A stretch of DNA of 63,416 nt, the filler included, from Reticulomyxa filosa (taxonomy: Eukaryota; Protista; Foraminifera): the NCBI GenBank assembly GCA_000512085.1. It is 17 parts of 17 records of this genome, joined end to end, with 100 filler letters (N's around TTAATTAATTAA, not from the genome) between each part and the next. Parts side by side here need not be neighbours in the genome. Positions count along the whole stretch, not along the records: positions 7,157 to 11,461 come from ASPP01015471.1; 16 more parts are not named here. One strand, given 5' to 3'. Made by a program: the position numbers and the translations under genes. The notes below the pieces were generated by a model. That model was given only the letters and a program-made list of their open reading frames with translations, searched no databases and was not told the DNA's origin. The stretch's first letter is position 1. Each line of letters opens with the position of its first letter. Shown here piece by piece: positions 6,984 to 11,561 of the stretch.

Positions 6984-7464
6984 CTTTTTTTTTTTTTTTT
7001 CTTTCTCTTTGTGTAAGGGAGGAAGGAGGGGAGAAGAAAAAAAAAAAGAAGAAGAANNNNNNNNNNNNNNNNNNNNNNNNNNNNNNNNNNNNNNNNNNNN
7101 TTAATTAATTAANNNNNNNNNNNNNNNNNNNNNNNNNNNNNNNNNNNNNNNNNNNNAAAAATTTTTTTTTTTTTTTTTTTTTGGGAAAAAAAAAAAAAAA
7201 TAAAGAATGAAATTTGCATTATTGCATGTCACTACGCGTTGGAAAAAAAGAATCAGCAGTTGGTAGATCTTGTAAACAAGTACGGTAAATACATTAAATG
7301 GGGGAAATTTGAATTCAAAGGAGAAACGGTAAAATAAATAAATAATATATACATATATAGTTTGTATACGTGCTCTGATTTTGTATACGTACTTTTTTTT
7401 TTTTTTTTCCTTCCTTCCTTCCTTCCTTCCTCCCTCCCTCTCTTGTGTGTATGTTTATGAATAG

Positions 7465-10220
7465 AACAACTTGTTGATGCACTTGATAAGTGACGTAGGA
7501 GCAAATAACTTGACTTGTGCAAGATATTTGTTGGAAAATGAGTGGTTGACAATGCAAGACCATGGCCTTGAGATTCAGGATGCACTGGAGGGGGCGATCA
7601 CTCGACAAAACTCGAACGCGATAAAAGTGCTATTGCGCGCAAAGTCGTTGAACAAACAAGAGAAAATGGCGCACGAATATGCGATGACGCAAATGAAACA
7701 AGAGAGCAAGTGCCGCCAATTGTTGCGTTATTGTCCATGAAAACCAGTGCGACCGAGTATACGACGACCATGAACAGTTTATTCAAAGTCGTGATTGCAA
7801 TGATCGACGATGGCAAAGTTGTCAGTAGCGACTTGTTTAACATGTGCTGGCTCCATGATAAGGAGCGACTTTGGAGTGCCCTCTTCAAAAAGTGCAAGTC
7901 TCTACTCCAGATCGACACCTTGCACCAGGACGTACTCGCCTGGAAGTGGCTCGAAGAATACCTGCTCGATAACAGAGAGCTGCTAGTGTGGCTGGATGAA
8001 ATGGAGCCAGTCGAAAAAGAAAAGAGAGTCGGTCCATGTCACACCAGTAAAAAAGTAGACACTGAAAAGAAAAGCAGCAGTGAAAAGCCAGACATTAAAG
8101 AGGAGGAAGAGGAGTTGCTCGAATCTAAATCGGTTGAAGACAACACCCAAAAAAATAGTCGTGAGGACCACAATAGTAAGGCTCGTAGTAATGTAAACAT
8201 TCGATGGAATCTGATCAAAAACTTTTGCATGCAAGACGTGGAATTAAAACAACTAACCGATTTGAACGAAAAAATGAACAGAGATTATAATCGCTACAAA
8301 AAAGAGTATGAACAGTTAATGTCCTGGAAATGGAGTGCACACAATAGTTTGGAGCCAGATGGAAACAAAAAACAGTCTGTACGGTGCAGACAAGACAATG
8401 ACTCCAAAGGTGTAAAGTGCACACTTACGTCGTCACAACTGTTTGAAATGCAAACGCAAAGTGACGACGTAATGTTTTATCCAAAGCACTTCTACGACTT
8501 TGAGATTTATTTAAGTGAACTGTTCACGAGGGCACACAAAATGAATCGCACATTTCAAACGGAAATCAAATCGATATTTGACGGACGTGAAGGATGTCTG
8601 TTCGAAGAGGGACCAGTCAAATCATTGGAACGTTCAAAATTAAAAGCTCAGGTAGAGTACAAAGACGCCCCTTTTCCAAGGTCGGCACAAGTTGTTGACA
8701 TATTGCGCTGTCAAATCACGTTCGATACTGTTATCCATCTCCTCAATGGCTTGGGACATTTCAACGTGATGATGATGTCTCCACGTTACAAAAACACGTT
8801 CAAAGTGGTACGTGTGAAAAATGAGTTTGCCGAATGTTTGTCGTCACAAAAACGAGACAAGTTGGACTTTTCAAAATTTATCGATATTAAAATGAACGTG
8901 TTGTTTACAAAGAACAATGAAAGCATTGTAACGGAAGTGCAATTTTCTTTAAAGATTATTGCGAAACTAAAAAAAAAGCAACACCCGCTTTACGAAATTA
9001 TGCGTCAAGAATCGTTTTTATACGATGCATTGAGAGCTATGAGTTATTCTCAATTTGACGTGCAATTGCAAATGGCAAGCTTTCACCCAAAGGAAATGGC
9101 AAATCTAATGCTATTTTTTCCGGACCATTTTGGATGCTCTCCACTTATTCATTGCAGCAAAGACTCCAAGGGTAGTAATTTCATTTCCCAAATGGCAAAC
9201 AACTCGCAAGTCGTTTATTCCTATGCCAATCCTTTGCTGCGGGCAAGACGGTTCATCCCACAAACAACAGTGCAAAGTAAACTGGTGCAACCCAATGAAA
9301 AAAATTCGTACCCACTCATGTTCGCATTGTGGAAGCAAACATCTATTGACACAATCAAATTGTTTATACCTCAGGAGGTTTGCGATGCAAAGACAGTATG
9401 GAATGCTATTAACGATGTTAAGTTTGAAATGGAGAAACCCCTTTTTTTTTTTTTTAACTTTTTTTTAAACCACAAACAAAAAAAAATGGTATAGATGAAA
9501 ATGTCTTGCATTGAATTTGGAGTAAGAAATGTAGCAGTACCTTTCTCGGAAATGTTGAAATTATTGCGTGAAAATGTCCGAGACGAAACTAGGTGGCAGA
9601 AGTTGCTACAATGTTCGGAGAATGATGCAGAATGCACTCCGTTGATGACAGCTGTGTTTTTCCAAGCTAATCTAACTTTGGAAAACGTTGAACAGCTTGT
9701 TCCAAAAAAAGTTACCAGCTCATTCTGGGAAAAAAAATGCAACGAACGTGTACATTCAAAAACGTTATTGCATTTATTATTTTTCCAGTCATTGCCAAAT
9801 GTACGCAGCCGTGTACAGATTTTTAAAAAACTGATACCAAAAGAATCATGGGAAAGACTGATCGTTACCACTGATGATTTTAATCAAATTCCATTGATGG
9901 AAGCATTAGCGAGATCACCAGAAATAAATGAAGAGATTATATCATGGTTACTCCCGAGTAAGATAGATGATTCACTTTGGAAACAACGTACATTCATCAA
10001 TCGAGTATCGACAGACTTGGATGGAATGAACTTATTACATTTAGCAGTGCAAAACCCTAGGATTTATGTATTAGGGACTTTGGAGTGTTTGCGAACGAGA
10101 ATTCCTACAAATGTTTGGAGTGAGCTGCTGAAAATGAAGGATGTTTTTGACGAGACACCGTTAGATGTTGCAAAGCGCTTGAATCAACCCAATGAAGTTC
10201 TTGTCGAATTGGAAAAGTAA
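7465..10220 (+). CDS. Ankyrin-like repeat protein with a central RelA/SpoT-like nucleotidyltransferase domain, 5'-partial
   Basis: Exon 7465-9416 has one frameshift between 7572 and 7737; intron 9417-9494; exon 9495-10220. Central motifs GPVKSLERSKLK, VVDILRC, VRVKNEF, DIKMNV and TEVQF. Ankyrin-like TPLMTA, IPLMEA, NLLHLA and ETPLDVA. Confidence 0.7.
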
Positions 10221-10859
10221 ATAATCGAGTTGCAAACAAACAGTCTTTTCGTTTGTTTGTAACGTTTTTCTGGGATCATAGCAACGTATTCTTGCTTGAT
10301 TTTTTTTATTTATCGTTTTTTCTTATAATTGTTTATTTTGTATGAAACACAGCTAGGGTGGGAATAGTTAGATGAAAGTGATGTAAGAGAGGGGTTGATA
10401 AAAGAGGGTGGGGGGGGGGGGAAATGGAGTGAGTGAAGAATGATATAGGGAGGGTAGAAGTTTAAACTTGGTTATTATACAATAAAAATGGACTCTTTTT
10501 AGAGTTTGTTCGATGGACTCTCTTGTCCTTTGGGACCTACACTATTTCATTATCCTTTTTTGCACTCAAGTTGTAGTAATCTTCTTGCTGACAACATTTG
10601 TTTTTATCCAACCAAATAAAAAGACTTGTAAGTTATGGAAACAAAATCGTATTAATTTAAGGAAACTCTGTTTAACTTATTTGTTTAATGTTTGCCTTTG
10701 TAAGACATCAAGTTTTATCTTTGCTAAAAATAAATGTAAGTTATATTGAAATGAATTCAAAGGCAAATAAAAAGAAGGATCCCCGTGAGAATTGTTTCAG
10801 GAGTACTTGAGATGAGAAACAAGAAAGTTAAAACCTTTTGTAGCGAGTATGGAACATAT

Positions 10860-11420
10860 CTAGAGTGATTTCCGACATTCAAGAAATGTGTTCAAAACAT
10901 TGTCTTTATAAAACTGCTCTTGCTCAGTTTTTCTGGATTTTGTGTTATCAAGATCAAGCCTGTGGACGAATGATTGCAAATTCAAAAAGTTGTTGTCTTT
11001 GAACAGTGTATTAAGCCTTTGATATTCACTGCTGTGATATTCAAGCAACGTGTGTGGCGCCAGCCTGAAGAGCTGAAGCCAGACACAGCCAGGATTGATT
11101 TTTTCTCGATACAAGCGCACAAGAATCCATTGGACATTGGACACGATGGACGCAGTGGATTTTTTGTGGTGAAGCAAAGGAGCAATGCACTCGACCAAGT
11201 CTTTCGATATCGCCCGTACGACATCATGTTGTGTTTTTTTATCTTGAATTTCTAAGCCCTGAATCATGTCTGTGTCTTGTCTCGAAGCCATCTTGTCGAC
11301 ACTGGTATCCCCCATCAGCGCCATTACACATTTCAAAAGTACATTGATATTTTTTACTTCCAAGGATGCCTCTGCATTTGCTCCATTGAGATTATTGTAC
11401 AAATCATTTTGATTTTTTCT
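10860..11420 (-). CDS. Last exon of an alpha-helical protein, possibly TTI1-like C-terminus
   Basis: 180-aa ORF ending in a stop. CIAPLL...ILVRLYREKINPGCVWLQL loosely resembles the TTI1 'DPD..W..L' tail; the assignment is weak. Confidence 0.35.
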   Translation of the reverse strand, partial: RKNQNDLYNNLNGANAEASLEVKNINVLLKCVMALMGDTSVDKMASRQDTDMIQGLEIQDKKTQHDVVRAISKDLVECIAPLLHHKKSTASIVSNVQWILVRLYREKINPGCVWLQLFRLAPHTLLEYHSSEYQRLNTLFKDNNFLNLQSFVHRLDLDNTKSRKTEQEQFYKDNVLNTFLECRKSL

Positions 11421-11561
11421 GGGAGAAAATAAACAAGCAAAAAAAAAAAAAGGAATATATANNNNNNNNNNNNNNNNNNNNNNNNNNNNNNNNNNNNNNN
11501 NNNNNTTAATTAATTAANNNNNNNNNNNNNNNNNNNNNNNNNNNNNNNNNNNNNNNNNNNN

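Follow-up and report, generated by a model that had tools for sequence, protein, structure and literature searches.

The DNA analysed here is a window of 63,416 nucleotides (nt; filler included) joined from parts of the genome of the foraminiferan Reticulomyxa filosa, a single-celled amoeboid eukaryote (assembly GCA_000512085.1). Positions 7157-11461 of this window are identical to contig ASPP01015471.1, which carries on its plus strand a putatively spliced gene whose core (8385-9050) has the fold of RelA/SpoT homologue (RSH) synthetases and lies between ankyrin-like repeats. The core domain falls inside the NCBI model RFI_19164. RFI_19164 is a member of a foraminiferan family of multidomain proteins in which ankyrins and a conserved linker precede a divergent RSH synthetase domain; in some members further ankyrins come after it.

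As reconstructed from the sequence and from paralogous loci, RFI_19164 is predicted to have about 930 codons, and its true 5' end is probably off the contig. In a preliminary description of this DNA the gene started at 7465, but a coding exon of 41 codons lies further upstream (7206-7328; AG at 7204-7205, GT at 7329). This 5'-most visible exon is ankyrin-like and is the start of the partial NCBI model; it is 35-40% identical to the paralogous loci and gives a weak match (10.6 bits) to an ankyrin hidden Markov model (HMM) that was built from homologues. The gene is predicted to be spliced, with two GT-AG introns, both in phase 0. Intron 1 (7329-7464, 136 nt) contains poly-T and a TTCC microsatellite, and its junction agrees with the NCBI model; intron 2 (9417-9494, 78 nt) has the same donor position in the paralogous locus L003 and a matching gap in locus L017. 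The long exon between them (7465-9416) opens with N-terminal ankyrin-like repeats in a first frame (7465-7733; Ank_2 E 0.035, 48-49% identity to three paralogous loci). The frame then changes near 7730-7737: the paralogs RFI_22376 and RFI_22575 (proteins P0002 and P0003) follow the first frame before this point and the second frame after it.

The second frame begins with the linker (7737-8384), which has a Trp-rich consensus, is conserved in the family alignments and carries a charged low-complexity insert at about 8005-8200. It gave no Pfam match and no informative match in the Atlas. The consensus (SD..L...W and WxWxK..LL.S.IW, within 7740-8384) is found family-wide directly before the enzyme, and the linker is a candidate for an autoinhibitory or oligomerisation module. 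Behind the synthetase-fold domain follows a region that is common to the Reticulomyxa paralogs by alignment (9051-9416); it has no Pfam match and possibly consists of divergent ankyrin-like repeats. The last exon (9495-10220, stop codon at 10218-10220) encodes ankyrin repeats (Ank_2 E 1.1e-5 on 9495-10217), and homologous sequence follows the core in three paralogous loci. Thus, of the flanking ankyrins proposed earlier, the C-terminal ones are well supported and the N-terminal ones are weak in RFI_19164. These values come from exons searched one by one. The NCBI model bypasses the frameshift by a skipped stretch, treats intron 2 as coding and calls part of the last exon as a separate gene. 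We rejected it because the paralogues run continuously across the frameshift site and the intron 2 region. The last exon is unbroken here and split into several pieces in the paralogous loci L017 (4675-5827), L003 (5223-6163) and L002 (5950-6896), which suggests 3'-biased intron loss in RFI_19164, as from cDNA, or intron gain in the paralogous loci.

The synthetase-fold domain, including an N-terminal extension with a conserved RQD motif, is supported by AlphaFold, structure searches and the Atlas. The earlier range of 8500-9030 had the right location; the true span is slightly wider. Modelled from an alignment of 118 sequences, the domain reached a predicted local distance difference test (pLDDT) of 94 and a predicted template modelling score (pTM) of 0.88; the core modelled from its single sequence reached a pLDDT of 39. 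The fold had been named in advance as that of RelA/SpoT synthetases, and the AlphaFold and Foldseek check bore this out: every PDB row listed, that is the top 20, was an RSH synthetase, with SaEAS (E 1.2e-6) and RelQ in the lead. When the model was compared, independently of Foldseek, with 48,161 chains by VIA-align, the top ten were all RSH enzymes (Z 12.6-9.0), and the first others were GLD-2 (Z 8.5) and TdT (Z 8.4). The best pair was RelQ with pppGpp (Z 14.0, root-mean-square deviation (rmsd) 2.6 A, 148 residues, 17% identity). We rejected TENT, cGAS and polymerase X as identities of the domain because their Z values are lower. Sequence searches of the PDB returned only noise (Tas1 on the Syn1 helix with a non-significant E of 2.3), and hhalign to E. 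coli RelA alone was unsuccessful. Judged from the predicted structure, the assignment to the RelA/SpoT synthetase fold is secure, though sequence profiles do not reach it. The term nucleotidyltransferase, used in the preliminary description, is correct as a name of the fold and incorrect as an activity; RSH enzymes transfer pyrophosphate, not nucleotide.

The five motifs first noticed in this DNA, PVKSLERSKLK (8613-8645), VVDILRC (8691-8711), VRVKNEF (8808-8828), FIDIKMNV (8877-8900) and TEVQF (8931-8945), follow each other in the reported order in one plus-strand frame. Their conservation was counted over 118 homologues that are about 30% identical to the query, a sample of top matches that is biased towards keeping motifs. 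The donor-ATP motif (8613-8645) reads PxKxxxRxxxK, canonically RxKxxxSxxxK: both Lys of Syn1 are retained (K79 in 117, K87 in all 118), its first Arg is changed to Pro and its Ser to Arg (R83, 115/118). The catalytic Asp motif DxxRC (8697-8711; canonical DxxGxR) contains D105 and R108, both without exception, as are R143, K145 and N146 of the RxKN motif (8811-8822), which is in register with RXKD, the acceptor-phosphate motif of Rel/SpoT. The acceptor loop (8877-8897) had been described as an altered GYxxxH, and the family form is YxDxKxN (canonical GYxSxH); YxDxK retains the Tyr of Syn3 in 114 of the 118 members. The catalytic Glu motif ExQ (8934-8942) is ExQFLL in the family and ExQxRT in canonical enzymes (E184 118/118, Q186 114/118), and the C-terminal helix (8970-9005) has KxxxHxxYxxxR for the canonical EHxxxY (K196 112, H200 114, Y203 115 and R207 115 of 118). 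Invariant throughout are K87, D105, R108, R143, K145, N146, N171 and E184, and 107/118 members keep all 16 core residues. The earlier statement that the catalytic Asp and Glu are kept therefore holds for the whole sample. Since these two residues and both Lys are kept in 117-118 of the 118 sequences, the family is probably an active ATP pyrophosphotransferase. The motif pattern with its observed spacing occurred in none of 20,000 shuffles of the open reading frame (ORF); this pattern was written after seeing the family and is a sanity check only, and conservation over 118 homologues is the stronger test.

FaRel2 contacts its donor ATP through R64, K66, S70, K74, R77, D90, R95, E145 and Q147 (PMC11782079). 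The family keeps the equivalents of K66, K74, D90, E145 and Q147, lacks R64 and has new Arg residues at the position of S70 and two residues before R95; these could compensate for the missing R64 equivalent. On the acceptor side, the positive patch of alarmone synthetases is large and that of tRNA-modifying enzymes small (PMC11782079), and the RXKD motif determines the preference for GTP or GDP in long RSHs (PMC3153485). The invariant RxKN together with the further conserved basic residues K169, K196 and R207 fits the positive acceptor patch of alarmone synthetases.

The family is large. A word search found four Reticulomyxa paralogues with 48-56% identity over the core, and a profile search of a library clustered at 50% identity gave 955 representatives with an E of 0.001 or less, 464 of them with an E of 1e-10 or less; the homologues inspected are the best 150 of the 955. 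When 30 top profile matches were looked up, 22 were named and all 22 were foraminiferan (nine R. filosa, nine Nonionella stella and four Bolivina argentea), the other eight being unnamed metagenome proteins. Homologues are present in the EukProt sets of Nonionella and Bolivina, which we take to be transcriptome-derived. The domain is present in no fewer than 17 gene models of R. filosa, some of which may be alleles or fragments. The 11 R. filosa members in the tree (FastTree, midpoint root) form one clade with a Shimodaira-Hasegawa (SH) support of 0.998, so the expansion is lineage-specific. Two R. filosa members, ETO20660.1 and ETO35982.1, are annotated as 'Ras guanine nucleotide exchange factor'; no RasGEF is among the Pfam families listed for ETO20660.1, and the name is therefore probably a misannotation. 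A giant-virus origin of the intronless metagenome members was set aside: their neighbours on two contigs are PH-ankyrin, PPR and protein kinase genes, and the contigs therefore point to a eukaryotic source. One of these members, P0018 on a Tara metagenome scaffold (locus L015, 1886-6607), is an uninterrupted protein of 1573 amino acids (aa) with two synthetase-fold domains (residues ~178-387 and ~1143-1361) and ankyrins between them; its frame lies 16 nt downstream of a PH-ankyrin frame, and the two may form a single gene.

The preliminary proposal to count paralogs and fused domains in Foraminifera thus revealed a large expansion with frequent repeat fusion. Pfam ankyrins are carried by 75 of 99 long members, and a few of the 99 contain RCC1, WD40, ZZ, CH, C1, RING or FYVE domains. 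With a home-made and insensitive HMM, the ankyrins of 107 members were placed N-terminally only in 56, C-terminally only in seven and on both sides in six. By a hydropathy rule, none of 86 long members has a signal-like N-terminus. As described before for the part of the gene present, no hydrolase domain is seen: HD, TGS, ACT and NACHT are not among the families listed for the 99 long homologues, and neither these nor NB-ARC gave a Pfam match in the pieces of RFI_19164, whose 5' end is probably off the contig. Pfam, NCBIfam, PHROGs and PADLOC gave no credible match on the core domain. Look-alikes in the Atlas include diatom-rich clusters, one of them ankyrin-fused (template modelling score (TM) 0.73) and one TPR-fused (TM 0.67), as well as a bacterial cluster in which 31% carry PF04607 (TM 0.63); the Atlas features gave a value of 0.93 to a PF04607 cluster.

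Among the closest known systems are the small alarmone synthetases RelQ and RelP (PDB 5ded, 6fgk and 6ewz) and SaEAS of Streptomyces (8vx3). The family shares with them the fold (Z 12-14, with an rmsd of 2.6-3.3 A across some 150 residues), the order of catalytic Asp, Glu-x-Gln, two donor Lys and acceptor Tyr, and the lack of a hydrolase domain. In contrast to these enzymes, the foraminiferan domains are only 10-17% identical, have rewired motifs, do not match PF04607 and are embedded in eukaryotic ankyrin proteins of 700-1900 aa with hundreds of divergent members. The fold is also that of toxic small alarmone synthetases (toxSAS), namely Tas1 (Z 10.0) and FaRel, which make (pp)pApp, and CapRel (Z 11.4) and FaRel2, which are tRNA pyrophosphokinases. 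CapRel is a fused sensor and enzyme, the logic that we propose for the foraminiferan family, and the N-terminal extensions align. Unlike toxSAS, the family is eukaryotic and intron-containing, and no pseudo-zinc-finger domain was seen; no antitoxin or conserved neighbour was found in the loci L001-L003 and L015-L017, and PADLOC gave no match. Long RSHs (Rel, RelA, SpoT and the plastid RSH1-4) have an HD hydrolase plus TGS and ACT domains, none of which is listed in the family; their plastid forms also carry a transit peptide.

The well-studied eukaryotic synthetases had been called plastid-associated at the outset; non-plastid eukaryotic RSH synthetases have, however, already been described (PMC3153485, PMC4986451). 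They are known as sporadic divRel proteins and as effectors of fungal NOD-like receptors (NLRs). The fungal RelA_SpoT-NACHT-WD40 NLRs combine an N-terminal synthetase with repeats and were proposed to act in non-self response (PMC4986451), but their domains match PF04607 and those of the foraminiferan family do not; moreover, no NACHT or NB-ARC is listed in the 99 long members, whose enzyme is central, usually after the ankyrins. The divRel proteins of Dictyostelium, ascomycetes and diatoms are synthetase-only RSHs, some without a known hydrolase partner (PMC3153485), and diatoms are also represented among the Atlas look-alikes of the family. The divRel group, however, collects unplaced sequences of sporadic occurrence, and PMC3153485 makes no mention of ankyrin fusion. 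RelA/SpoT domains further occur in polymorphic toxins, plant-pathogen effectors and phage polyvalent proteins (PMC5512222 for the polyvalent proteins). The domains of phage polyvalent proteins and giant viruses gave a best viral structure match of E 6e-8 with up to 22% identity, above the cellular small alarmone synthetases (SAS). No relatives were found in phages and plasmids by tblastn or in GTDB, IMG/VR and JGI metagenomes by pattern scans, methods that reach close relatives only and are no proof of absence; a donor relationship to the viral domains is unsupported at the sequence level. Proteins of two giant viruses of protists, Hyperionvirus (A0A3G5A8M0) and Fadolivirus (A0A7D3R1N1), in BFVD have the same fold (E 2e-4 and 6e-4), and a host-virus exchange is possible. 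Altogether, fold and catalytic residues place the domain in the RSH superfamily, and it would work like a small alarmone synthetase; long RSHs, toxin-antitoxin modules and NLRs are different systems, to none of which the family belongs.

RFI_19164 itself is a poor representative of the family, given its frameshift and a unique substitution: it is the only one of the 118 sequences with Phe at the Tyr of the acceptor loop (8877-8879), and it also has Ser at a conserved Leu. When FaRel2, PhRel2 and FaRel are to be purified, they are routinely impaired by the same change of Tyr to Phe (PMC11782079). The frame change at 7730-7737 may stem from an error of the assembly, or it may be a real lesion that inactivates the gene. 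Whether this copy is a true pseudogene or catalytically weakened paralogue, and not an intact gene with assembly errors, is evenly balanced in our judgement. The frameshift, the Phe at an otherwise invariant Tyr and the Ser at a conserved Leu argue for decay, as does the finding that core residues are degenerate in 6/11 Reticulomyxa members compared with 5/107 others (Fisher p 5e-5), a comparison biased by the detection of close relatives even when degenerate. However, the open frames are otherwise long, the GT-AG sites are intact, 15/16 core residues are kept, and the shift sits at a short run of T. A shift of frame is also seen in the paralogous locus L002, near 5650, where RFI_22376 changes frame just after the core region, and this could be an assembly habit. 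Frame changes are thus recurrent in the family or in the assembly. For RFI_19164, birth-and-death turnover and assembly error appear about equally probable. The family matters more than this copy.

For the intact members, we propose that Mg-ATP would be bound as donor by the Lys/Arg helix, Asp and Glu, and that its pyrophosphate would be moved to the 3'-OH of a purine nucleotide to give a (pp)pGpp- or (pp)pApp-type molecule. More speculatively, the repeats and the linker might hold the enzyme off until a partner or a foreign protein binds, so that the protein would serve in the cytosol as a sensor-effector, under stress or when prey, symbionts or viruses are in conflict with the cell. The analysis shows the fold, the conserved active-site residues, the architecture and the Reticulomyxa-specific expansion; catalysis, the product, a sensor role of the ankyrins and any immune role are what we infer. 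Such an ATP:nucleotide 3'-pyrophosphotransferase, with ankyrins and linker as its gate and a cytosolic product of the (pp)pGpp or (pp)pApp type, is in our view the most likely mechanism, with about as much chance of being right as of being wrong. Several points weigh against it. Sequence similarity to canonical RSH is not significant: PF04607 and the NCBIfam RSH models are unmatched, and in the PF04607 check suggested earlier none of the 118 members had such a match, with an E of 0.1 or less, in the families shown. hhalign to 11 canonical synthetase domains gave a non-significant probability of 0.4%, albeit with colinear motifs. The residue register is a putative one, taken from motif order and fold. 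The first donor-site Arg is Pro, the Arg of Syn2 lies two residues away from its usual place, and other residues than the canonical ones stand at the S, H, RT and pre-His Glu positions. Finally, ankyrins are generic adaptors, and the N-terminal extension of the model also aligns with the tRNA-modifying CapRel.

This last point leads to an alternative, in which the family adds pyrophosphate to tRNA or some other RNA at the 3' end, as CapRel, FaRel2 and PhRel do, and stops translation upon a trigger sensed by the ankyrins. Among the RSH matches, the extension (model residues ~9-35) is aligned only in the rows of CapRel (163-169 residues) and FaRel; it contains the conserved RQD, and in FaRel2 the N-terminal extension binds tRNA (PMC11782079). 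In addition, the Glu before the final His of the guanine-specific RelP and RelQ is absent from the family, and tRNA is a target present in the eukaryotic cytosol. We nevertheless consider this reading unlikely, as RelQ, SaEAS and RelP reach higher Z values (14.0-12.3) than CapRel (11.4) and FaRel (6.9) do and many invariant basic residues surround the acceptor side, as opposed to the small positive patch of tRNA-targeting enzymes. An active RSH-fold enzyme with another chemistry or acceptor, such as a pyrimidine or deoxy nucleotide, cyclisation, or a protein or metabolite hydroxyl, would explain why all motifs are rewired and yet conserved to the same degree (R to P, S to R, DxxRC, YxDxKxN, ExQFLL, KxxxHxxYxxxR); an extra near-invariant Asp, D167, might also hold a second metal, as happens in pol-beta transferases. 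Every characterised RSH-fold match, however, moves pyrophosphate to a ribose 3'-OH, and the Z values of true nucleotidyltransferases are clearly lower (at most 9.9, with 102-144 residues aligned), which makes this quite improbable. That the proteins are non-catalytic nucleotide-binding scaffolds would agree with the missing first donor-site Arg and with the six of 11 Reticulomyxa members that deviate at core residues; but Asp, Glu, Lys, Arg and Tyr are near-invariant in 118 sequences of about 30% identity from several foraminifera, as expected of catalysis, even if the top matches are selected for motif retention, and we regard such pseudoenzymes as very improbable.

Near the edge of the contig, a 180-codon open frame on the minus strand (10863-11402) converges on RFI_19164 and is uncalled by NCBI. 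It has no match in Pfam or NCBIfam and none to the proteins or loci compared; possibly it is the last exon of a neighbouring gene that is cut by the contig edge.

In the literature covered, we found no description of a foraminiferan or ankyrin-fused RSH family or of its rewired motifs; subscription journals and most supplements were outside this coverage. Many animals and amoebozoa have the hydrolase Mesh1, and eukaryotic synthetases have been seen only sporadically (PMC3153485). It is an old question whether (p)ppGpp-like alarmones are made or used by eukaryotes outside their plastids, and the family now offers hundreds of candidates that are invisible to Pfam and have near-invariant active sites. 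Its altered motifs could reveal new RSH products. Even plain ppGpp, if the family directs it against ingested bacteria, would still be a new use of an alarmone. It is tempting to go further and to see in the family a large and rapidly diversifying set of ankyrin-gated cytosolic sensor-enzymes that make a nucleotide messenger or a tRNA modification undescribed in the eukaryotic cytosol, that is, an immune or stress system with the logic of cGAS-like receptors on a RelA/SpoT fold whose specificity motifs are rewired, but this we put forward as a doubtful proposition. Expansion, repeat fusion and copy turnover do resemble a receptor family under conflict, and if that is true, nucleotide-based immunity would extend to Rhizaria.

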